A stretch of 64,000 nucleotides of DNA from Zygnema circumcarinatum SAG 698-1b. Its lineage: Eukaryota > Plantae > Zygnematophyceae. Each line of letters begins with the position of its first letter. Position 1 is the stretch's first letter. Positions 32,171-50,517 of the stretch are shown piece by piece. The notes beneath the pieces are model-generated. The model did not search any database and was not told the DNA's origin. It saw only the letters and a program-made list of their open reading frames with translations. The stretch spans positions 1,054,001 through 1,118,000 of the forward strand of contig CM074817.1 in assembly GCA_037447605.1 (NCBI GenBank), given 5' to 3'. The position numbers and the translations under genes are program-made.

Positions 32171-33053
32171 CGTATCTGCGCGCTGGACCGCCGACAAACG
32201 GCCGCCGCGAGCCTCAAAATTATTGCCGATGAGGGCAGGGACGGAAATGGGGCGAAAAAAACATCAGCGGGCAGGACCACACATTTCAATGCCCGGATCT
32301 TGCATATCGACGGACGACAGAGATTAAAGTCATATCGGACGGTGTAATTGCGCCATTAAAAATGTCCTTCTGGACTGCCCGTTTCGACTGATAAGAAATA
32401 ACGGGCAGGAAATGCCCGATAGCTATTTTAAAATTGGGTCAATGTCGGCGACCGCGATATCTGGGCCGGCAGTCGGTTGGTCAGTTCCCGACAAAAAAAC
32501 ATGGCACCGACGAGCGTCAATCCAATCACTGATAACCACGTGGCATGTCGGCGCCGCCGTACGAGTATGGTTAATTTCCCGGCCGTCCGTCCGCCGGCTC
32601 GCGGCCGTCCTCGGGCAGCCTCTCCCTCACTCCCTCTCTCACTTTCTCTCCCTCTCCCACTCCCTCTCCCCCGCCCACTCTCTCTCTCTCGATCTATCTC
32701 TCACTCTCTCTCCCCGCCTTTAAAGATTTATTTATTTATTTATTTCTCTATCTCTCTACATATCTCTCTCCCCCCCTTTCTCACTCTCACTCTCACTCTC
32801 ACTCTCTCTCACTCCCTCACATTCTCTCTCTCTCTCTCGCCCCTTCTCCTCCCACAATACACTCCTTTCCCACATTCCAATGCCGCATCTTACTATCCTC
32901 TCCTATCTCCTCACGCCACACTCCCCCCCCTCTCTTCCTCTTTCCTCTCCCTCCATCTCCCTCCATAACTTCAAATCAGCTTAAATAGTAATCCTAGCTT
33001 CATCTAAACTCTAAAGTCACCAAAATATAAAAAATAATTACTAACTCGGATCC

Positions 33054-34222
33054 ATGACACATACTCTCCCCCTCTTAGCCCTCCTCACTGCGAGCTTCGC
33101 AGGAGCCCTCTCTCTCTCCCTCCCCAGAAAATTTTTACAGGAACAACCCACATTAGAAATTTCAACAAAAACCCATCTCAACTTCCCATCTCACATAACT
33201 CCCCTCCTCTCACAACCCCACATTGGCCGCACCTTAAAAGATTACTCCTACTTCACATTAAACGGATTAACATATGATGGAGGCCGAGTAGCTTCAGGAG
33301 GAGTGAATGTATACCTTATATGGTACGGAAACTGGACCAATTACAACTCCTCTAAGGAGTTAGTTCGAATTTTTGTGAACTCTCTTGGGCCCAACAACAC
33401 CGCTTTGAGCTCTCCCTCAGTGGAGGGATGGTGGGGACTGGCTATGCAATTCTATTCAAGCGGACCTGGAGCAGGCTATGTCAACTCTAACATTAGTCTC
33501 GCAGAGGAGTATGAATTTAGCGGTTTGGTGCAGGGAAGCATCTTAAACACCAGCACGGTTCTTAATATACTTCTGTCGGCAATGAAGGATGGGCTTCCTG
33601 TGGACGATCATGGCTTCTACTTTGTGATAACTTCTCCGGAACTGGAGGTGAGGTGGGGTGGGTGGGAGAGGGGAGGGAGGGAGGGAGTGGGCGGGTGAGA
33701 GAAGTTGGTCAGGGCGGTAGAGACAGAGGGGAGCGAAAGGGACCGTAAGAGCTATGGAGGGGAAAGATGGAAATGGGGTGGGAAGGAGTGCAAGGAAGTG
33801 AGGGGGTGATGGGTAGTTAGGAAAGGATGGAGAAAGAGCAGGAGGAAGGGTGAGGGGGTGGGAGGGAGAGGAGTCTTAGGACAGGTGGGGGGGAGATGGA
33901 GGAACGTATGCAAAGTATTGGCTGGGTGCTCTATGAAGGAGGTAGGAAGAAAAAATTAGAGAGGATTGGAGAGTGGGAGGAGGAAGGTAAGGATGGCGGG
34001 GAAGGAAAGGAAAGACTGGGGTAGACCTGCGGGTGCGTTCTCGTAAGGAAGCAAGCTTTTGTAGGGGAGCGAGAGAAAAAGAGAAGCAGAAAAAGCGTGA
34101 AGGGAAGAAAATACTCGTTCAAGCACGTATCTGTGAATCAAACCTCAATTTGAAACCTTAAAACTCCTGAAATTGCTGTGAAAAATAATGGAAGTGAAGT
34201 CCCAATTTCTTCTCTCTCTCTC

Positions 34223-34253
<31 letters not shown>

Positions 34254-37200
34254 AAACTCCTTACGTTTACTTTACTGTGACAGCTGGGAAATGACAGCTA
34301 CGGCAGTCCCACCTGCTACTGCAACATCCGAGACTGGACGGATGCATATTACAATACCAGCATCTCGTATGCGTGGGTCACTTACCCCAACTCCACCTGC
34401 TTGAGCGACTGCTCCAGCTTTGTTACTGGAAGCGGATACATATCTCCCAACGCGGATCCTGGAGGAGACGCAGTTGTGAACCATGTGGCAATGGCCATGT
34501 CCGGCATGGCCATGGACCCGGAGCTGAATGGATGGAGGGGAGAAAACGACCAGATTGATGCGGCCTACCTCTGCAAGTACAATTACAGCACTACCAGAAC
34601 CAATGCAGAAGGAGGTACGGAAAGGCTTTGAGAGCAGGTTCCAAGGAGTAGTTAAAGTGGAAGAGTCTAGGTTTATGCTAAAAAGTGAGGCTAAGAAACC
34701 AGCAAAGTCTGCTGGTTTACTGTGAAATGGCCTAAGGTGAGCCTATTTTGGGGCATTGCAGGAACCTTTAATGTGTACGGAAGCGGCAATACTACATTTC
34801 TCATTTCTCAAATGTGGGACGTCGAAAAGGGTTCTTGTGGCTTGCAGGCTTCTGCTTTTATCCCTCCGCCTCCGCCTCCTCGACCACCTCCACTACCACC
34901 TCCTCCTCGTCCACCACCTCCTCTCCCACCCCCTTTGAAAAGCCCTCCTCCTCCTCCTCCTCCTCCTCCGTCACCATACCCACCTCCTCCCTTCGCTGTA
35001 TCAACACCACCTCCAGGTTCTTGTTCACCTTTCCATCCTGCATGCATGCTATTTTAATGAGATTTTTTTTTCTTTTTTCGATTAGTTGGTTCAGCAAGAC
35101 GTATGCCAATGTTCCTCTTCAAAATCTTGTACGCTGGATTAAAGCTAATGGCCTTTCTAATGTTTTGATCCAAACGACTTTCTGGAAGGGGTTTCCGACA
35201 GCATGCTTTTAATAGTCTCAAGTCCTGCATTCAACCATGACTACCCTCTAATTGTGCGATCGATTTTTGTGACGGCTCCAGGTGAAAAAAAATCGAGCAA
35301 AAGTCTGGTTCCTATTATTGTTGCAATAGCTGTTTGTGTTGGCCTTATTTCCGTAGCAGCGTTCTTGGTTTTCCTTTGGTGGATGCGCCGACGCAAGGAC
35401 GCTTCAAAAGCTTCACAGAAAGGTGCATAAAATGGCTCCTGATTGCAATTTCTTGCGCTTCTTTCTCTGTTTCTTACTCCCTCTCCCTGCTACTCAAACA
35501 CATAGCAAACACACCAAAAAGTACAGTACACACAGCACATCATAAACAGCAGTTTTCAAGTACATATTGACGTTTCCTTCTCGTCCTGCTGCATGTGACT
35601 GCATGCGAGAGTCTGACAATACAAGTTTTCTTGCCTGTTATATTGCCGCGTACAGGCGTGCCTCCAGGAGGGGGACCGCCCGGAGGGATGCTGGCGCTGG
35701 GCGCGGGCGGAGGCGTGATTCAGCTTCCGGGCGGACACCTCATTCAGGCGTGGACCCTTGAAGAAGTCGCAGCAGCGACCGGGAATTTCAGCGACGAGAA
35801 CAAGCTTGGAAAAGGCGGATATGGAACAGTCTACAGAGGGACTGCTCCCGATGGCTCCGTTTGGGCGGTCAAGAGAGCGCTGCGAGTGAGCGATGGAGAG
35901 GCCGACTCAGAGTTTGAAGACGAGGTGAGCTTCACAACTGCATGGCATGCAGAAAGAGTTTATTATTCAGGAAAGAGTATTGCGTAGAAATCCCTTATAA
36001 CATTTTTGTGGTTATATTCATGAGCCGAGACTGGCATGGTGCCAGGTTGAGTGTCTTCAAACCCTTTTACAGTGATCCAAGGAACTTCTTAGCGTTTGCA
36101 GGAGAGGCTGCTGATATTGGGAGGGGAGGAAGTGCAGGTCAAACTGATCGCACCCATGGCGCACCGCAACTTGGTCTCTTTGAAGGGATTCTGCGCGGAG
36201 AAGGGAGAGCAGATTCTCATATATGAATTTGTGGCAAATGGAACACTAAAGCAGCACCTGATGCTGGATCCAAGTGAGGCCCCTATCCTGATTCCGCATT
36301 CTCTGAGTGAAGGATTTCAAAACCTTGCAAAGCCCTCTCGCTTCCTTCAGACTCGATTTGAGATAACGTCATGAAGGGGCTGGGAAGTAATGCATCCAGC
36401 AATGCCTTCATAATCTCCGTAGTTCTCAGTTGGGCAAGTGAACATTTCGACAAGTGACGCATACATCAGTGACTCTCAATTCGCTTTATCAATAGATTGA
36501 TAGCGTGGAACCATCGAAAGAAATTAAATCGAGGCGGTATGTTTATTCACATGCAGACAAGTATTCCTGAGCCTAGCTACTGCCTTTAAGCTCATTGAAA
36601 TGTGCTAACTTGAGCTAATCCGTTTGTTTCTCTGTTTGCTCTGCACACAGAGCTCGGCGGAGTCCCATTGAGTTTCGCGCAGCGTTTGGAGATTGCCATC
36701 GGCTCCGCGCGAGGGCTGCAATACTTGCACAGCTTCGCGAAGGAGCCGGTCATCCACCGCGACATCAAGTCGGAAAACATTCTCCTTGATGCGAACTTGC
36801 AGGTGAGAGAGCCGCACATTAATACATAAAACACACTTGAATACACTTTTTATACTTTTTACCAGACTATACCTCTCTGCCTATATCAACATCGACATGC
36901 TTATTGTGCTCTATTGACTGTTCCACCATCTGCAGGCCAAAGTAGCAGACTTCGGTCTTTTGAAGCCCTTGAATGAAGAGGCGACGCACGTGTCAACGCG
37001 CGTTGCAGGAACCATCGGCTACATGGACCCTGAGTACCGTCAGCTGCACCACGTTTCAACAAAAAGTGATGTGTATAGGTGAGTTCTAAGGGGAGAGCTC
37101 GAGAGGGAAGGAGGCCCAGATGAGGTTTAACAAAGGCGTCTACACTCCACTTACTTTTTCAGAAGCAATTCAACGCATAGTTTTGTGTGTTCACATAGTT

Positions 37201-37867
37201 TTGTGTGTCAATGCAAGTGATGTATTAATGTGTCAGTTTGGCTTCTGTTCCTAATGGCGAAATTTGCATGTGTGGCTGCAGCTTTGGAGTGGTGCTCTTG
37301 GAGCTGATCACAGGGAAGAGGCCGATCGTATTGGCGGACAGTCCTGCAGAGGGAGAGCAGACAATGGAACGCATCACTTTGGTGCAGTGGGTCAGTCCTG
37401 AAGCGCTCCATCTTCTTCAAAATCTTCACTTTACCTTCCTTTCTCTTTTCCATCTTTTTTTCTTTTCCTTCTTATCCTTTATTCTGTCTGTAAATGCTTG
37501 GATTCCAACCCTAGCTGACTGGCTACAATTGTGTGTTCAGGTAAACCTGCAAGCTCAAACTGAGCAATGGGCGGCCATAGTTGATCCTCTCCTTAAGGAA
37601 GATTACCCCCTTGAAGGCGCCAAGAGGTTCATCCATCTTGCAAGACTCTGCACACAAGTGGAGAGCCATACGAGGCCGAGCATGGAGGAGGTTACAAGGC
37701 GACTTGAAGAGATAAAGTCTGGAGGGGCTGTGGACTGGGACAAGGAAATTGGAACTTTACCGAATCAAAGGATCTCTTCCCCTTATCAACACGACCTCAA
37801 CTCTATAACAACAAGCACAACCGAAAGCTTCATTCCTCCACTTTCAGAACGTCCAGGGATCCGGTGA
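33054..37867 (+). CDS. Receptor-like kinase with PHI-1/EXORDIUM ectodomain, Pro-rich linker, TM helix and RD Ser/Thr kinase; ~818 aa, 10 exons
   Basis: Exons 33054-33647, 34284-34614, 34762-35016, 35282-35422, 35656-35924, 36138-36273, 36651-36802, 36936-37078, 37282-37390, 37541-37867 (2457 nt, in frame). Signal peptide [23 protein letters not shown]-1 motifs [71 protein letters not shown]. Kinase [43 protein letters not shown]. The 35016 to 35282 junction is inferred from the phase match. Confidence 0.82.
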
Positions 37868-39842
37868 CCGGGTCTGCCACGGCACAATCAAATCATGTTT
37901 TTCCTTTTCTTGTCAAAAGAAAATAGTGATGGACAGTACAGTCAGAAGGCTGCGCAGGCTAGGTCAATCAGTTCATTGACTAATTATGTAATTAGAAGTT
38001 TGGAGAGGAAGTTTGTTTAAGATGGAAACAAGTGGCGAAGAAGCGAAATGTTGATGTGCGTCGGAGGAGGAGGAGGACAGTTCCTCCTTGTAAGAGCGAG
38101 TCGGCTTACCCTTTAAGCGTCAGAAATTGTTTGTTATGCCCCCTCGGCCGACCCTTCATGGAAAGCAGAGGTTCCGACGACTTAACTTTTGCCCTTTTGG
38201 ACGGTGCCCTGCTCCGCATTTCTGCCGATGTTGCGGTGGCCGACCTTCCAAAACCCTAAAAACCCTAGGAACCCTACCAACCATCAAAACCCTAAAAGCG
38301 CCTCTGGAGGCCCCTCCAGCTCCGCTCGCCACTTGGCGCACATCGGCGCCCTTTGCGGGTGCTTCTAGCGCCGTGTTGTTGTTGTTGTTGTTGTCGTCGA
38401 AGCAAAGTTGTGCTCATGGCTCTCCGGTCCAGCTCATAATTTTGCGGAGATTTCGGGCCGAGGGACGCGCGCACTCGCACTTGCCAGCCGGGATTGGTGG
38501 GACACGTGGGCACGTGCCATTCGCTGGGACCGAGCCCCTTCACAGATCTAACGGTTGTCGTGGCGCGATGTGCGAGAGAATTGACGGTGGAGATTGAACG
38601 CACTTGTGAAGGACGCACATCCGCGAACGACCTCGTGGCGGACGGATCTTCCGCTCCGAGCGGATTCGGGCAGGCTGATTTTTTTTTTCTCTCAAAAAAA
38701 ATTTCAGGGGGGATATCCAAAATGGGGGGGCGAAATATCATTTTCCTTGTTCTTTCTCTCGCCCTTTTGTCCTCTGTGAGAGGTTGGCTCCTCGTGGTTC
38801 CCCGTGTTGCTGTTGTTGTTGGCCATGCACCAATCATGCCATGGCCATGCGTGAGACCAATATCCAAATTGAATTCATTTTTGTGAAGGCAAGTATAGAA
38901 CCGTCCATTGCGAACTTAGTCAAGCACCTGCCAATGGCGCGCTGCCACGTGGACAATCTTTCACACTTGGCGAATGCCTAATGGACGTGTTGAGTCTCTC
39001 AGTTTTAGGGGTTTGGGTATTAGGGTCTAAGGTTTGGGGTTTAAGGTCTAGGCGACGGAGAAAGACCAGTTATTTCGGTGTCATAAAGAAAGACTCGAGA
39101 GTGAATCTTGTGCCGTTTCAGACATATGCAATTATGGGTGATTCATTCATGCATGCATGCTGGCGTGCGTGTGCTGCTGCATGTCACCGTTAGGAAGGGC
39201 CGAGCCGACTTAAGGCTCCTTTGGGCATATAATGCGAGGCGAGGCAGGATGGAGGGAGGGAGGGAGGGGAGGAGGGAGGCAGGGGTGGGAGGGGAGGGAG
39301 AGGGGGGGAGGGAGGGAGGGAGGGAGGGAGGGAGGGAGGGAGGGAAACAAGAAGGTGCTCTGATGTAGTTTGCAGGTGGAGAGGACGGGGGCCTTAGTTT
39401 ATATATGGTAAGTAGAATAATTTGCAAGGGGAAGGGGACCATCTCGCTTGAGCAATTGAGCCTCTCATACTGTCATCTTTTCTACGATGTCAAACGCCAA
39501 GTTGATATTCTTCAATACGAGGTAAGCGTGCAGATGCAAGCAATAGGGTGGGTCAGACTTAGCCCCGAGCGTACTAATTCCCGAATTTAGTACAGGCTAC
39601 TCACGTTATAGTGACATTGTTTATAATAACAGCATGGATATACTGCAACCTTTGCGTCCCCGTAGTGACGTCATTCCCGTACGGAGCCAGCCGTGGTTCT
39701 CCATGTTGTTGCTGTCGGCCATGCACCATTCATGTCATCGCCATGCGTGAGACCAACGCCAAATCCTTCTCGTTCTCTTCTCCTTCCTTTCCTTTCCTTC
39801 CTTTCTCTCGACCTGTTTCGGGGGGACTAGTACTGTACACAT

Positions 39843-41468: not shown

Positions 41469-44400
41469 ATGGCGACGTTGCGAGGAGCCGTTGCGGCCTG
41501 CATGGCGGTGGCGCTGCTGGGGGCGGTGGGACTGGGGGAGGGGGTGGAGCTGGACGCCGGGGACAGTGAGTGGCCCGCTTCTGCGCTGCTCAAGGAGGGA
41601 GGGGGGAGGGGGAGGGAGAGGGGGAGGGGGGAGGGGGAGGGGGGAGGGGAGGGGGGAGGGGAGAAGGGGAGGGGGGAGGGGGAGGGGGGGGAGGGGGAGG
41701 GGGAGGGGGAGGGGGGAGGGGAGGGGGGAGGGGAGGAGGGGAGGAGGGAGGGGGAGGGGGGAGGGGAGGGGAGGGAGGGGAGGGGGGGAGGGAGAGGGGG
41801 AGGGGGAGGGGGGGGAGGGGGGAGGGGGGAGGGGGGAGGGGGGAGGGGGGAGGGGGGGGAGGGGGGAGGGGGAGGGGGAGGGGGAGGGGGAGGGTGGGGA
41901 GGGGGGAGGGGAGGGGGAGGGGGAGGGAGAGGGGGAGGGGGAGGGGGGAGGGGGGAGGGGGAGGGGAGGGAGGGGAGGGGAGGGGGAGGGAGAGGGAGGG
42001 GAGGGGGAGGGGGGAGGGGGGAGGTGCGAGGCGGGAGGAGGAGGGGGAGGGGAGGGGAAGGGTAGGAGAAGGGTAGGAGAAGGGGAAGGGAGGAGGCTCA
42101 GGCTGCCACGGCGGCTCTCGTTCAGAGGGTGCGGTAGAAGGGAGAGAGAGGGATTTGTGGGAACTGTCAGGATAATTAACTCTTACTATGTCGTTGTATG
42201 ACATTGTCTCAGAAGTGGGTCTCATAATGACGATGGTGTTTGACATGAGTGAGGTGCATAGAATTAAACACAGCTCCTTCGGGCGTTTGGCAACTCATGA
42301 CCCCACTTTCAGCAAGTCTCCATTAACCGCACAATTCACGTAACCATGGCAACCTCCTATAGAATTTGCTGAATCACGTTAATAAATTAAGCTATATTAT
42401 CGTATACTATGTAAATTTCAAGTTTGAAAATTCCTTGTAAAGGCTAAGGTTTCGATACGTAACAAGTAACATACCGGAATTACGGCTGATGATGATATAC
42501 GTTTCTCTTAGTCCATAATATGCGAACAGTGTTGCTCATATATTACATAAGTTCCTTCAATTTTCTTCTTTCTTTCTTCTTCTTTCTTCTGTCGACTAAA
42601 AGTTGAATTTCAGGCTCACCTGTGGCTCTTGTAAAGTCCAAACTTCGCAATGCTCAAAGCTGTAGTGAAAGGTGGGAGGTACGCTTTAATGCTGCTAGCA
42701 GCCCTTTCAATGGTTTTTTTTGCGTGTCCTGACGAGGTTTTTTCTTGTGCTTGGAACACACCCAGGCATCGCCTTATTATCAATAAAGAATTCCTTCACA
42801 AATGCTTCCGTCCTGTCGACATGGACGGCGAACAACACAAACTGCAGCTCCTGGGTTGGCCTCACTTGCGACTCTGCAGGCCGAGTCATACAACTGTAAG
42901 TTCCGTCCTGTTTCTGGGAAGCAGGAAAGCTGTGAAGGCCTGCTTCTTTATCTGCTTTACTCAATGCGTTTTCTTCAATATTGCCAGCAGTTCTGCAGCA
43001 TATGGTTGATTAGCAGGGACCTTGAGTGTATGCAGTTGGGTTTTTTCTGTATCACTTCCAATCACTGGCTTCAATTTTCCTAAAACCTGTTTGGAATGAT
43101 ACGTGCAGAGATCTGTATAACATGGGTGTTGGAGGAGTGATCTCACCTGCAATCGGCGGCCTGACGAAACTCCAAATTTTGTAAGTTCTATGCCTAGGAT
43201 CAAGACATTACTAGGAGAGAAACTCTTATCGTTATTGTATCGTATTGTATCGCTGCTCCATCAGTGTGGCTCTACCTCATCGTGCATCCTCGTTGAAGGT
43301 CACCAGACTCACAAATTAGGGTTGCTGGCAGAAACCTTTATCGCAATGGCTTAAGTGGAGCCATTCCAGACACAATCGGCAACCTTACAAATCTACAACT
43401 CGTGTGCGTATCTTTCCTATAGACTTTCCCTCAACCAACATTTAGCCTTTCAGTGTATGCGAAGTGAATCCTACATTGAAAATTTCTCTACAAGGATATT
43501 TTGAAGTTAATTGAAGTTAAGTTGATTTTGAAGCTCCCTAATTTATGTTGCCCTTATTCAGACCAACGCTATTGCTGCTCACAGATACTTGAAAAACAAT
43601 CAAATAAATGGCAGCATCCCAGACACAATCGGCAACCTGACCACCCTGCAGTATTTGTAAGTGTTTCGTCAACCTGAAACTTTCACTCAGCCGAAAACTC
43701 TGCAATTTGACCAATGCGGAAATCTGAGAAGAAACTCATGTTTCTGATTTTTGTCTATCTGCGATGGCTGGCAGATTTCTTAACATGAACAACCTCACTG
43801 GCGCCATCCCCCCTGTACTCGGCAACCTTGTTAACCTAACGAAGCTGTGAGTTTCATGTTCATGAAGCCCTACCATGTGCTGGCTCTATCTGCTATGATA
43901 TACCAAGCCACCTTTCAACGTACTTAACTCGGCAGATGCTCATTAAACTCAGTCATCACCTTTGCTTGCAGTTTTCTCAGCTACAATCAGCTAACCGGCA
44001 CAGTCCCCGAGACTATTGGCGGACTCACCAACCTGCAGGAATTGTGAGTTTTTTCATGGAGGTTCTCATTCGAAATGGCAATCATGATTATGAGATGCTT
44101 CCAAAAAGGAATGTGTTTCCATTGCCCAGTTTTCCTCGCCTTCTTTCCACCTTTTTCGCTTTTCTCACCCTAAATGCCCACTCCTACTATATTTTTGCCT
44201 CCCCGATTCGAATCTGATTCGCTTTCATCTGATCTCCCCAACCTGTCTCAACTATGTGCAGGGGAATGGATGGTAATCGGTTGGAGGGAAGGCTCTCCAA
44301 TATCATCGGCAATCTCACATACCTCAAACGCCTGTGCGTTCCAGTTCTTCCATCTTGATCAAACCTGTCCTTTTGCCTTAACAGTGTGCAGGGAGTCCTG

Positions 44401-47400
44401 CCTTGAATGGCATGTGAGTCTCTGCAAGTTTTCTGCATTCACAGCAAAGCAACGCTCGCCCTCATCCGACATTCTAATCTCGTGTTGATTCATTCAACGT
44501 CTCCAAACTTTCAAGCGCTTCTTCAGTGTCTCTCACACGCTGCCACGCGCGTTTCTGCAGATACCTAAATAACAGCCGTTTCACAGGCTCCATATCTTTG
44601 GCCAGCGACTTCCTTCTCACAGTCAACGTTGAAGGAAATTACTTCTCTGGACCGCTAAACTTCACCAAAAATGGCACAAGCTTCTGCTCCTTGGTGGACA
44701 GCAACTGCCTTTTCTTCTACGACTCGTCCGGAGGCTGCGCAGCTTCCCAGCTTCAGCGGAGTCCTTCAGAGTGCGCGGCATTTTGCAACAGTGCGGATGC
44801 CGCCGGTACATGCAGCGGCCATGGCACGTGCGCGTTCGCCACAACCACATGCAACTGCGATGAGGGATACACATTGGCGCTAGGGACCTGCTCTCCATCC
44901 AGTGAGTGGTTTCTTACTATGGGAGAGATTCTGCTGAGGGGCTGATTGATGCTTGTTGCAGTCGATCATGCTCAACGAATGGTCCATACAGTGGGGTTTA
45001 TTGATCAGCCACTCTAATTCCTATATATTGCTATCGCTTTTGTGACAGCTGCAGGTGAAAAAAAGTCGAGTCAAAATCTGGTTCCTATTATTGTTGCAAT
45101 AGCAGTTTCTGTTGGCCTTATTTCCGTAGCAGCGGTCATTTTTTTCGTTTGGTGGATGCGCCGACGCAAAAGAGCTTCATATAAAGGTGCATAGGATGGC
45201 TCCTTGCTCCGATCCCCTCTGCCACACATGCATATCACAACTGTCTCCGGCTCATGCTGTGCACTATCTTCAATTTCGTTCATCCTTATTCATCGACCGC
45301 CGCTTACAGTCAACTTTCCTTTCCCAACAAAAAGCGTGCCTCTCCTAATAGATCCCTCCCGTGAAACAACTCATAGAAGACGATAAACTGCCTACCATCT
45401 ATATTCCTTGATTCAAACACAACAAGCAATACATTACTCACATGACACTACACACAGCAGTTTGAACATAGATTTTGCTCTACTCTCATTCTGCTGCATA
45501 TCTGAGTTTGACAAAGCCAATTCCCCTGTTATATTGCCGCGTACAGGCGTGCCAGGAGGCACGCCCCCCCCTCGAGGGATGCTCTCACGGGGGGCGGGCA
45601 GAGGAATCATTCAGCTGCCGGGAGGACATCTCATTCAAGCTTTGACCCTTGAAGAAGTTGCAGCAGCGACTGGGAATTTCAGCGACGAGAATAAACTTGG
45701 AAAAGGCGGATATGGAACAGTCTACAGAGGGACTGCTCCCGATGGCTCCGTTTGGGCGGTCAAGAGAGCGCTGCGAGTGAGCGATGGAGAGGCCGACTCA
45801 GACTTTGAAGACGAGGTGAGCTTCACAACTGCAAGGCAGAGGGAGTTTACTCTTCAGGAGAGAGCAGCTTGTGGAATGCTGCTGCATTAGGTTGACTCCT
45901 TATCTTCCTTTCATTATCTCCTCCAAAAGTCTTACCTCCATCTGCTGCTGATAATCATATGCAATGACTTGCACTTGCAGGAGAGGCTGCTGATATTGGG
46001 AGGGGGGGGAAGTGCAGGTCAAACTGATCGCACCCATGGCGCACCGCAACTTGGTCTCTTTGAAGGGATTCTGCGCGGAGAAGGGAGAGCAGATTCTCAT
46101 ATATGAATTTGTGGCAAATGGAACCCTAAAGCAGCACCTCATGCTCGATCCAAGTGAGGCCCCTTTCCTGATCCCGCATTCTCTGAGTGAAGAATTTCAA
46201 AACCTTGCAAAGCCCTCTCGCTTCCTTCAGACTCGATTTGAGATAACGTCATGCTGGGGCTCACTTCGTTTTATCAATAGATTGATAGCATGGAACCATC
46301 GAAAGTAATTAAATCGTGGCGGTATGTATATTTACATACAGACAAGTATTCCTGAGCCTAGCTGCTGCCTTTAAGCTCATTGAAATGTGCTAAGTTGAGC
46401 TAATCCGTGTTTTTCTTTCTGTTTGCTCTGCACGCAGAGCTCGGCGGAGTCCCGTTGAGTTTCGCGCAGCGTTTGGAGATTGCCATCGGCTCCGCGCGAG
46501 GGCTGCAATACTTGCACAGCTTCGCGAAGGAGCCGGTCATCCACCGCGACATCAAGTCGGAAAACATTCTCCTTGATGCGAACTTGCAGGTGAGAGCCGC
46601 ACATGCCTTATTCAAACACACATGAATGTACTTTTTATACTTTTTACCAGACTTTACCTCTCTGCCTATCTCAAGATCAACATGCTCATTATGCTCTATT
46701 GACTGTTCCAACCTCTGCAGGCCAAAGTAGCAGACTTCGGTCTTTTGAAGCCCTTGAATGAAGAGGCCACGCACGTGTCAACGCGCGTTGCAGGAACCAT
46801 CGGCTACATGGACCCTGAGTACCGTCACCTTCAGCGTGTTTCAACAAAAAGTGATGTGTATAGGTAAACAATATGCAGAGGGCTAAGAGAGGGAAGGAGG
46901 GTGCGAAAGGGCAGCGGATGAGAGTTACAAAAAGTGTCTATGCTCCAATCGATTTAAAGCAATTCGACACGTATGTGCCTTCTGTGCCTAATAATGTGAT
47001 CTTTGCATGTATGGCTGCAGCTTTGGAGTGGTGCTCTTAGAGCTAATCACAGGGAAGAAGCCGATCGTATTGGCGGACCGGCCTAAAGAAATAGAGCAGA
47101 CAGTAGAGCACATCACACTGGTACAGTGGGTGAGTTCTGAAGCGCCCTATATCAACTTTGGATCTTCGTTCATCTTCTTACTTTTCTTTCCCACCCTTTC
47201 TTCTTATTGCTTCTTGTTTTGTCTGTAACAGCTTAGTTGTAACTATAGTTTTGAGACTTTTATTTGCTTCTTTTGCTGCTCATCTTGTTTGCTCAGGTGA
47301 ACCTGCAAGCTCAAACTGGGAATTGGACAGCCATAGTTGATCCTCTTCTTAAGGAAGATTACCCCCTTGAAGGCGCCAAGAGGTTCATTCAGCTTGCAAG

Positions 47401-47623
47401 ATTATGCACTCAAATGGAGAGCCGAGTGAGGCCGAGCATTGAGGAGGTTACAAGAATTCTTGAAGAGATAAAGTCAGGAGGGGCTGTGGACTTGGAGAAG
47501 GACATTGGAACAATACCGAATCAAAGAATCCCTTTCCCTTATCAACAGGGACCCGGCTCCATAACCACAAGCTCAAGTGAAAGCTTCATTCCTCCACTTT
47601 CGCAACGTCCAGGGATCCGGTAA
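41469..47623 (+). CDS. LRR-EGF receptor-like kinase (RD kinase), ~755 aa, 16 exons
   Basis: Signal-peptide exon 41469-41565. LRRNT exon 42766-42895 ([20 protein letters not shown]). Six 72-nt LRR exons: 43109-43180, 43332-43403, 43585-43656, 43775-43846, 43972-44043, 44262-44333. LRR+EGF exon 44561-44901 ([15 protein letters not shown]). TM exon 45055-45186. Kinase exons 45547-45815, 46018-46153, 46438-46589, 46721-46863, 47021-47129, 47297-47623. Total 2268 nt, in frame. Confidence 0.9.
41590..42065 (+). repeat. (GGGGGA/GGGA)n G-rich tract in intron 1 of the LRR-RLK
   Basis: Directly visible; the Gly- or Pro-rich ORFs here are artefacts. Confidence 0.9.
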
Positions 47624-49287
47624 ATTAGGTCTGCCTCTGCAGCATCAAAACTTGTATTGATGATTATGTTTTCTAAGTTAAATAGATGGTTCAAGGAAGC
47701 AAAGCTGAGTAAGCGGTCAATCAATTTATTGGCTACTTAATCAGAGAGAGGTTTGGCAAGGAAGTTTTCTCCACTTTCAGTGACCAGAAAGGAGCCAGTT
47801 CGTCCTTGTTAGACTCCGCTTTCAAACCCCGCAAGGGACGGTTCAATTTCCTAGAAGGCTAGCCAGATTCAGTGGAGAGAGAGAGAGAGAGACGAATCGT
47901 GCAGGACAGATAGCTTTACCTTTCAAAACAAAAGATGCAACAAAATAAGTAAAACATACCACTCCAGTGCATCCGGCAATAAAGTATTTGCTCTCAGTTC
48001 ATATTGACAAGGTTCGACAGGAGAGGAAAGGATTCCACAAATTTCTCCTCGCAGGTAGGTCGGGCCGCGCAGAGAGAGAGGCTTTTGAATATGGAGAGAG
48101 AGGGGGAGTTGGAGAGAGCGAAAGCGAGAGGGAGGCAAAGAGAGTACCAGTAACTTGCGGACAAAGAACAAACGGCGAGTTCAATAGGACTGGGCGACAT
48201 GTGGACGCAGACGGACGGCACGGACTATCCTCCAGTCGGACGAGGACCTCACACGTGTGACCACGCTAATCCGTGACAGTTAGGGTGGGTTCCCATCAGC
48301 CCGTTATTCCGACGTGGCGTCGTAATGGACGACGACCCATAGGTTAAAAGGCATGGAAAGAGGGAAGAGAAGGGAGGGGAGGTGGCGGCTGTAGTGGTGG
48401 CGGCCGTCGCCTCGGTCGCGTCGGTAACCGCGGTGGGCCACAACGGACGCTTCAATTCGTGCACGTGGCAATCGCTGATTGGTAAACGGCGTTTTGATGG
48501 AACTCGTTTCATCTGCAAAACGGCATCCTACGTGGACCGTAACGAGCTCGTTACGAAACGAGCTGATGGAAACCCACCCTTAGCGTGCCAAACAACATTT
48601 CTAATTGTCGCATGGACACGCCACGTGTCCGCGCGAGATTTTCGGACATTGTTCGAAGACCCGCCACGTGTCCGCAAAAAGACAGACTGACTAACTGACT
48701 AACTGGGATGAATGCCTGTTCACTCTCACGATCCCAGGCATGTATTCATCCACACATCATGCATGCATGTATGCCATGCCATGCCATGCCATGGGTGGAT
48801 AGATGCATGGTATGGCCCGGATCCCGCGTGCCGAATTCAAACGCCGCCCTTCAAAAGGCGGGCGAGCAAGACGCACTCTCCGCCTCCGAACTGAAACAGC
48901 AACTGAATTTGAAGCTGTCGGAGCATGGAAGCGATACCACGACACGACTGCAAGTCATGGAGAGGTCACTTTCTATCGGTGTCACATTTTCGTTCCTTGG
49001 ACTGTTCGCCGTGTCTCGTGCATCCCATTTGTTTGTCGCATAGTGAGACGGTTTCCAAAACGAGCATTTCTATGCTACTGACCTCAACTCCGTCCTCTTC
49101 TCATCAGCAAAACAAAGTCCCTCAGTCGAAAATCATGACTGAAGCACATCACATCTCAAAGACCGTACGGATCCAAGGAGCTCGTCCGACGCAAAACGTA
49201 ACTGACCCTCACCATGTAAACCCTAAAGTGCTCGTCAACCTTCCTGCCCACCTGACGTGGGAAGCCACCCTCGTTTCCATCCCTAAC

Positions 49288-50305: not shown

Positions 50306-50517
50306 AGGAAGAAGCGAGTAAGGAGCCATCCTATGCACCTTCATGTGAAGCAATTGAAGCTCCATTGCGTCGGCGCATCCACCAAACGAAAACAACGAGC
50401 GCTGCTGCCAAAATAAGGCCAACAGAAACTGCTATTGGAACAACAATAGGAACCAGATTTGGACTCGATTTTTCCTCTTCACCTGCATCTGTCACAAAAC
50501 CGACAGCACAGCAATGC

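Follow-up and report, generated by a model that had tools for sequence, protein, structure and literature searches.

A probable receptor kinase gene with a PHI-1/EXORDIUM ectodomain in Zygnema circumcarinatum

Does a PHI-1/EXORDIUM domain in the alga Zygnema circumcarinatum form the extracellular part of a receptor kinase, or do a secreted PHI-1 protein and a kinase lie side by side as two genes? We addressed this question in a window of 64,000 nucleotides (nt) (CM074817.1, positions 1,054,001 to 1,118,000, forward strand), and all coordinates given here are positions in that window. To our knowledge, the biochemical activity of PHI-1/EXORDIUM has been unknown since 1999. The family is tied to brassinosteroid-promoted growth and to carbon status; a 2024 preprint adds cellulose synthase regulation and still reports no likeness of PHI-1 proteins to anything whose function is known (10.1101/2024.01.24.577082). 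EXL proteins recur in stress data sets of zygnematophyte algae. Judged from sequence, positions 33054-37867 (+) probably hold one gene in which PHI-1, a transmembrane (TM) helix and a receptor kinase are fused, because the same layout is found in homologous transcripts, the TM exon is internal in a paralog and few phase-compatible donors are available.

The gene model was rebuilt from the raw sequence. It comprises ten exons between 33054 and 37867 (+), encodes 818 amino acids with zero internal stops and has GT...AG borders at nine of nine introns. This reproduced the layout that an earlier note on this DNA had claimed, namely a signal peptide, a PHI-1 domain, a proline-rich stalk, a TM helix and an RD kinase on 818 residues without a stop; Pfam matches and motifs agreed, and the signal peptide was judged from hydrophobicity alone. 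The gene is built as follows, with a slash marking splice borders.

33054-33647, + strand: exon 1, with the start codon, the signal peptide (residues ~1-23) and the N-terminal half of the PHI-1 domain; donor GAG/GTGAGG
34284-34614, + strand: exon 2, middle of the PHI-1 domain; the helix that bears HExxE in canonical members reads AMAMSG here
34762-35016, + strand: exon 3, C-terminal PHI-1 strands (FNVYG...FLISQMWD...GSCGLQ) and the proline-rich stalk; closes at the phase-1 donor CAG/GTTCTT
35017-35281, + strand: intron 3, 265 nt, 40% GC; the stop met on read-through (35055-35057) and an in-frame ATG (35203) lie in it
35282-35422, + strand: exon 4, symmetric phase 1-1, with the TM helix and the RRRK stop-transfer sequence
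35656-35924, + strand: exon 5; exons 5-10 jointly encode a Gly/Pro-rich juxtamembrane segment, an RD Ser/Thr kinase and a C-terminal tail
36138-36273 and 36651-36802, + strand: exons 6 and 7, part of this block
36936-37078 and 37282-37390, + strand: exons 8 and 9, part of this block
37541-37867, + strand: exon 10, the last exon; stop codon 37865-37867

We assessed the predicted protein from its N-terminus inwards. Pfam Phi_1 (PF04674; cut-off 25 bits) matches exon 1 with 56.7 bits over profile positions 1-120 and exon 2 with 31.5 bits over positions 131-231, so that the whole domain is represented over profile 1-231, and the C-terminal strands and last cysteine align with the homologous transcript P0151 (described below) and with the family consensus. 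The predicted protein keeps the cysteines, glycines and tryptophans that are structural in PHI-1. Ten N-glycosylation sequons and six cysteines are present in the ectodomain; the signal peptide and Phi_1 are only ~45 residues apart, and the protein has no CUB domain. After PHI-1 comes an extensin-like stalk of ~55 residues, 71% of which are proline. There are only two hydrophobic segments, at residues 4-23 and ~403-425. The first, judged by its hydrophobicity, fits a signal peptide, and its n-region has no basic residue. The second forms a single TM helix with a Kyte-Doolittle peak of 3.05 at residues 405-423, directly followed by RRRK in a positive-inside arrangement.

On the cytoplasmic side, Pfam kinase models match exons 5-8. 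The G-loop, the AVK lysine and the HRD, DFG and DPE motifs are intact, as in kinases of RLK/Pelle type (RLK, receptor-like kinase), and identity to the land-plant RLKs tested is 40-44% over the full kinase domain; apart from the two transcripts described below, plant RLKs are the best matches. Since the stalk, TM helix and kinase follow the domain in the best-supported model, the protein does not resemble a soluble PHI-1 protein of ~300 amino acids. It is also no PERK, in which the proline-rich part is the only extracellular part, because its stalk comes after a globular PHI-1 domain of ~280 residues.

The same layout was found in two homologs, P0077 and P0151, both of them EukProt Trinity transcripts whose open reading frames (ORFs) are marked as complete; P0077 came from an exhaustive HMMER search with exon 1. 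P0077 has 914 amino acids, with Pfam Phi_1 at 182-441 and a kinase at 575-848. P0151 (918 amino acids) is 63-75% identical to P0077 and likewise contains PHI-1, a TM helix and a kinase. When the spliced model was compared with P0151 by local blastp, residues 49-770 aligned with 154-862 in one high-scoring segment pair (35% identity, E 1e-123) that covers PHI-1, the linker, the TM helix, the juxtamembrane segment and the kinase. This colinear match places the predicted gene model far past chance. Both homologs thus share with the window protein the order PHI-1, short linker, one TM helix and RLK/Pelle kinase, colinear over 720 residues, and the window kinase is 51% identical to each of theirs. 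They differ from it in a ~165-residue N-terminal extension before PHI-1 and in a linker made of Ala/Ser/Thr, where the window protein has its proline stalk, and the PHI-1 domains are only 28-30% identical. Translations of the window exons, entered as separate rows against P0077 and P0151, gave a scattered alignment that was unfit for a profile and was set aside.

The two homologs and the window protein also share the loss of a conserved motif. Six polar PHI-1 columns (H...HExxE...ExxD, with HExxE on one helix) are 86-96% conserved across 69 reference domains, and 57 of the 70 domains formed by these references and the domain of the window protein keep all six residues. At these columns the window domain has R, M, A, G, D and Y. 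Among the 70, all six are lost only in the window protein, P0077, P0151 and P0001, the last of which is from another organism (assembly SRR8128905 of the SRA). The P0013-type proteins keep them. With all six residues gone from the kinase-linked branch, the window ectodomain would most likely serve as a non-catalytic binding module.

Further evidence comes from paralogous copies of the TM-kinase module in the same window.

45055-47624, + strand: TM-kinase copy 2, behind an ectodomain of leucine-rich repeats (LRRs) and an EGF-like domain; same phase-1 acceptor, all splice sites conserved
45055-45186, + strand: TM exon of copy 2, homologous to exon 4
50482-50337, - strand: third copy of the TM exon; acceptor and donor contexts conserved

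In copy 2, the phase-1 donor that closes the LRR and EGF-like ectodomain feeds the TM exon. Ahead of its acceptor, ttttgtgacagctgcag/GTGAA, there are only 13 stop-free codons and no ATG. Since copy 2 thus has no possible start of its own, the TM exon is internal and symmetric (phase 1-1) in this family. The homology between copy 1, in the PHI-1 gene, and copy 2 sets in at 35255, 27 nt ahead of the acceptor, and extends to 38014, introns included, with 90% identity in exons and 55% in introns. This sharp edge inside an intron is the signature of ectodomain exchange by intronic recombination. The ratio of nonsynonymous to synonymous divergence (dN/dS) between the copies amounts to 0.34 as a whole and to 0.24 for the kinase core, at a dS of ~0.2, and both kinases are accordingly under purifying selection.

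The fused gene depends on the join between exons 3 and 4. As the earlier note had stated, the phase-1 donor at 35016 (CTCCAG/gttctt) matches the phase-1 acceptor at 35282 (...ggctccag/GTGAAA), and reading through 35016 leads to the stop at 35055-35057 (ORF 34722-35057). The tail of exon 3 offers three phase-compatible GT donors (34908, 35016 and 35022). Only 35016 has CAG on the exon side, and its exon-side consensus is the best of the three. Several observations weigh against the join. Among the nine donors of the gene, CAG/GTTCTT at 35016 is the weakest. The earlier note had seen no alternative start between the two parts, which proved wrong: the in-frame ATG at 35203, with A at -3, opens 26 stop-free codons into the TM exon (ORF 35203-35430), so that on sequence alone a kinase-only start has to be taken seriously. 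P0013, a secreted PHI-1 protein, has a proline-rich tail but lacks a TM helix, a natural architecture which indicates that exons 1-3 could stand alone. The window's own protein, moreover, had no match above 52% identity when exon 1 was searched against 1.84 billion representatives, and it was likewise not found by searches with the PHI-1 part of P0077, the kinase part of P0077 or P0001.

The weak donor, the ATG and P0013 would fit two adjacent genes, that is, a secreted PHI-1 protein with an extensin-like tail ending at 35055-35057 and a TM-kinase that starts at 35203 with an extracellular stub of 26 residues. We consider this arrangement unlikely. The stop at 35057 and the ATG are only 146 nt apart, scant space for a terminator and a promoter, and the composition of 35017-35281 is intron-like (40% GC, compared to 38-45% in introns 2-9). 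The ATG is not conserved in copy 2, whose same acceptor must serve an internal exon. Two adjacent genes would also leave the colinear layout of P0077 and P0151 to be accounted for, as well as the state of the window domain, which has lost the six polar residues like the kinase-linked domains, whereas P0013-type proteins keep them. In the single fused gene, the splice from 35016 to 35282 would be the one used in vivo.

If the gene is fused, how old is the fusion? The abrupt start of copy 1/2 homology at 35255, its continuation through introns and 3' untranslated region and the dS of only ~0.2 could point to a young event, in which the TM-kinase of the LRR-EGF kinase was copied by intronic recombination behind a secreted PHI-1-extensin gene. 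The likeness to P0077 and P0151 would then be convergent, and the product may have little or no function. We estimated a quick maximum-likelihood tree of the 70 PHI-1 domains. Without constraint, the window domain pairs with P0001 as its closest relative (99% SH-aLRT; 43-50% identity depending on the columns), and P0077 and P0151 stand apart on a long branch, a result that favors the young event and counts against one old family. However, a forced clade of the window domain, P0001, P0077 and P0151 was not rejected and had a likelihood above that of the short free search tree (p-AU 0.69), and with the motif columns removed it was again not rejected and again had the higher likelihood (p-AU 0.92). 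The forced-clade result may partly reflect long-branch attraction, which also has to be set against the old family; with that caveat, the trees are compatible with one old PHI-1-kinase fusion.

Other evidence makes a young fusion quite improbable. Both the PHI-1 subtype with its six lost residues and the kinase clade are common to the window protein and P0077/P0151, and the kinase is under purifying selection, as judged from dN/dS. Since P0001, from another organism, shares the degenerate PHI-1 state, this state predates the local duplication. The P0001 ORF is cut short by a retained intron exactly at the position of the window exon 2 donor; the donor in its contig (L001 1140-1183), GGAG/GTGAGA, lies at the same codon position, so that this intron position is conserved between two organisms. 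An untranscribed or decaying pseudogene, to which the weak third donor and the poor pyrimidine tract of the exon 6 acceptor might point, is highly implausible given a frame of 818 codons open over ten exons, intact splice sites and catalytic motifs, a dN/dS of 0.24-0.34 against the paralog and the conserved structural cysteines, glycines and tryptophans of PHI-1. The window gene is best explained as one member of a family of PHI-1 receptor kinases that is small and older and includes P0077 and P0151. With regard to the rarity of this family, and to that alone, ESM Atlas searches found no large cluster with Phi_1 and a kinase. An AlphaFold DB cluster search returned PHI-1 relatives, some of 700-1200 amino acids, in entries without names from which kinase fusions could not be read.

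What might the ectodomain be? AlphaFold2 models of the P0077 ectodomain (pLDDT 85, pTM 0.86) and of the canonical PHI-1 protein P0060 (pLDDT 92.5, pTM 0.89) were compared with the PDB. By VIA-align, catalytic domains of adamalysin, ADAM and ADAMTS proteins filled nearly all of the top 40 rows (Z 7.2-8.6). In a Foldseek-independent search, nearly every one of the top 23 rows was a metzincin-type or related metallopeptidase domain, with ADAM22 first (Z 9.1), and unrelated folds appeared from rank 24 (Z 6.1 or below). In the P0060 model, HExxE lies mid-helix (residues 202-206 of helix 191-209), where zincins carry HExxH. The zinc motif HExxH itself is absent, canonical PHI-1 having HExxE and the window protein neither.

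Several results speak against a metzincin relationship. Foldseek matches were weak (E 0.01), although they too were to metalloproteases (ulilysin, ADAMTS and snake-venom enzymes). For both models and by both other search routes the top matches were metzincins only (Z 8.0-9.1, 150-175 residues aligned), but they are in a range, Z 8-9, that the notes of the tool call middling. Lenient Pfam scans of canonical PHI-1 gave no sequence-level link to peptidase families, and a PHI-1 profile searched against PDB sequences linked no solved structure. On the strength of the predicted folds and the motif, and nothing else, we regard a relationship of the PHI-1 fold to metzincin/zincin metalloprotease domains as about evenly balanced. 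It is a doubtful but possible further step that PHI-1/EXORDIUM is a divergent, zincin-like extracellular metalloenzyme or metal-dependent binder (HExxE), of which a catalytically dead branch became directly linked with a receptor kinase among the algae related to land plants. If true, EXO-type growth and wall signalling would have begun as, or paralleled, a direct receptor-kinase pathway, and the ligand of this receptor would point to the substrate or partner of land-plant EXO proteins.

Two side observations concern the range of the PHI-1 family. P0060 begins with a bacterial lipoprotein-like signal (LLLSAC), and in the ESM Atlas search with exon 1 one top cluster was mostly bacterial and had no common Pfam family. 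The PHI-1 family may not be confined to eukaryotes, which would fit an old, enzyme-like origin.

We infer the following scheme for fold relationship, ligand and signalling. The protein would be a type-I single-pass receptor kinase with a cleavable signal peptide, a heavily N-glycosylatable PHI-1 domain that has three conserved pairs of cysteines, and then the stalk, the TM helix, the juxtamembrane segment and the kinase. The rigid proline-rich stalk, probably hydroxylated to hydroxyproline and O-glycosylated, would hold PHI-1 out in the cell wall, where the domain could bind a wall-derived peptide, protein or glycan non-catalytically, and occupancy would activate the kinase, which is of the plant RLK/Pelle RD type and catalytically competent by its motifs. 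The ectodomain would thus act as a receptor without catalysis, analogous to the catalytically dead ADAM22. If the zincin fold holds, soluble PHI-1 proteins may be metal-dependent enzymes or binders, and the kinase-linked branch would be a pseudo-enzyme binding module. Retention of intron 3 might yield a soluble PHI-1-stalk isoform as well. Within the cluster, intronic recombination just before the phase 1-1 TM exon would later have placed copies of the TM-kinase module behind other ectodomains. The earlier note had proposed that PHI-1 can act as a ligand-sensing module, and this reading gains some weight because, among 70 domains, the kinase-linked ones and their nearest relative alone have lost all six residues. 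That at least three genes contain a natural fusion of PHI-1 with a receptor kinase is an argument for PHI-1 being able to act on the receiving side of signalling.

The remaining observations concern splicing, the surroundings of the gene and its copies. The acceptor at 36102 (cgtttgcag/GAGAGG) has a better pyrimidine tract than the one used at 36138, which is poor, and looks stronger; it would add 36102-36137, that is, 12 in-frame residues, to the kinase N-lobe. We dropped it as the main form, the insert being absent from P0077, P0151 and copy 2. Given these homologs without the insert, 36102 is perhaps an alternative 3' splice site and may give rise to an isoform of 830 amino acids. A long, CT-rich, microsatellite-like tract (32600-32960) lies upstream of the start codon, a purine-rich (GA/GGA) tract at 33650-34000 occupies much of intron 1, and degenerate plant-type telomere-like repeats (CCCTAAA variants) are found in the intergenic DNA downstream of the gene (38240-38310).

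The full gene of copy 2 spans 41469-47624 (+) and encodes a signal peptide and a plant LRR N-terminal cap, then about seven LRRs with one per exon, an EGF-like domain and the TM-kinase; after the first exon comes a long stretch of low complexity, rich in GGA/GAG (41600-42100). The plant-type LRR cap, like the extensin-like stalk, PHI-1 and the RLK/Pelle kinase, is in keeping with Streptophyta. Between 36096-37114 and 45975-46900, the middle part of the copies, introns included, is 92-97% identical, compared to 76-84% at both ends, a profile that suggests recent gene conversion within an older duplication. For the third TM exon (50337-50482, - strand), there is no kinase homology downstream on that strand. 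This exon would be either spliced to a different cytoplasmic part or a relic.

Taken as a whole, the locus presents a clear case of ectodomain swapping via a symmetric phase 1-1 TM exon, and the predicted fusion offers a tractable assay for PHI-1 through chimeric receptors and ectodomain pull-downs. New here, as a testable idea, is a zincin-like PHI-1 with a catalytically dead, kinase-linked branch; the metzincin-like predicted fold, together with the split between soluble proteins that keep the motif and kinase-linked ones without it, makes a testable hypothesis for both groups. We found no link between EXORDIUM and metalloproteases in the papers searched.

The earlier note had taken this receptor class to be apparently undescribed, which holds in part. 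In the metaRLK preprint, which holds the one relevant mention that our literature searches turned up, CUB/Phi_1 is among the 20 commonest multi-domain receptor-kinase ectodomains of 528 plant genomes and is classed under Pfam domains not yet in the receptor-kinase literature (10.1101/2023.12.21.572927). That class resembles the window protein in having Phi_1 as the extracellular domain of predicted receptor kinases. It differs in being listed as a combination with CUB, which the window protein lacks, and without gene, species, analysis or experiment; a description or study at the level of a gene is not given there. PHI-1 is not mentioned in a 2024 receptor-kinase review or in a 2026 survey of green-algal receptor kinases. 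The PHI-1 receptor-kinase architecture has thus been counted so far, not described or studied.

Compared to known systems, the window domain shares its cysteine pattern, its core residues and an extracellular, glycosylatable nature with canonical secreted PHI-1/EXORDIUM/EXL proteins (PF04674). These are soluble, have ~300 amino acids and keep H...HExxE...ExxD, whereas the window domain has lost the six residues and is tethered to a kinase. ADAM22 is a catalytically inactive ADAM and the receptor for LGI1. It can be likened to the window protein as a metzincin-like ectodomain that serves as a receptor without catalytic residues, and it matches canonical PHI-1 (Z 9.1) and the P0077 ectodomain (Z 8.3). 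Unlike the window protein it has no kinase domain, the two have no detectable sequence relationship, and the fold match is only moderate. PERKs resemble the window protein in that an extensin-like proline-rich segment adjoins the outer side of the TM helix in an RLK/Pelle kinase, but have no globular ectodomain; the kinase compared with a PERK was that of P0077, whose 38% identity to a PERK8-like protein makes it no nearer to PERKs than to other RLK subfamilies. In PR5K, a thaumatin-like receptor kinase, a secreted apoplastic family was recruited as an ectodomain. The same recruitment applies to CRK/DUF26 receptor kinases (for DUF26, see PMC6368629). PR5K and CRK/DUF26 are land-plant classes with studied members, and the folds of their ectodomains are unrelated to that of the window protein, yet the window protein likely took the same route, from a secreted apoplastic family to the ectodomain of a receptor kinase.

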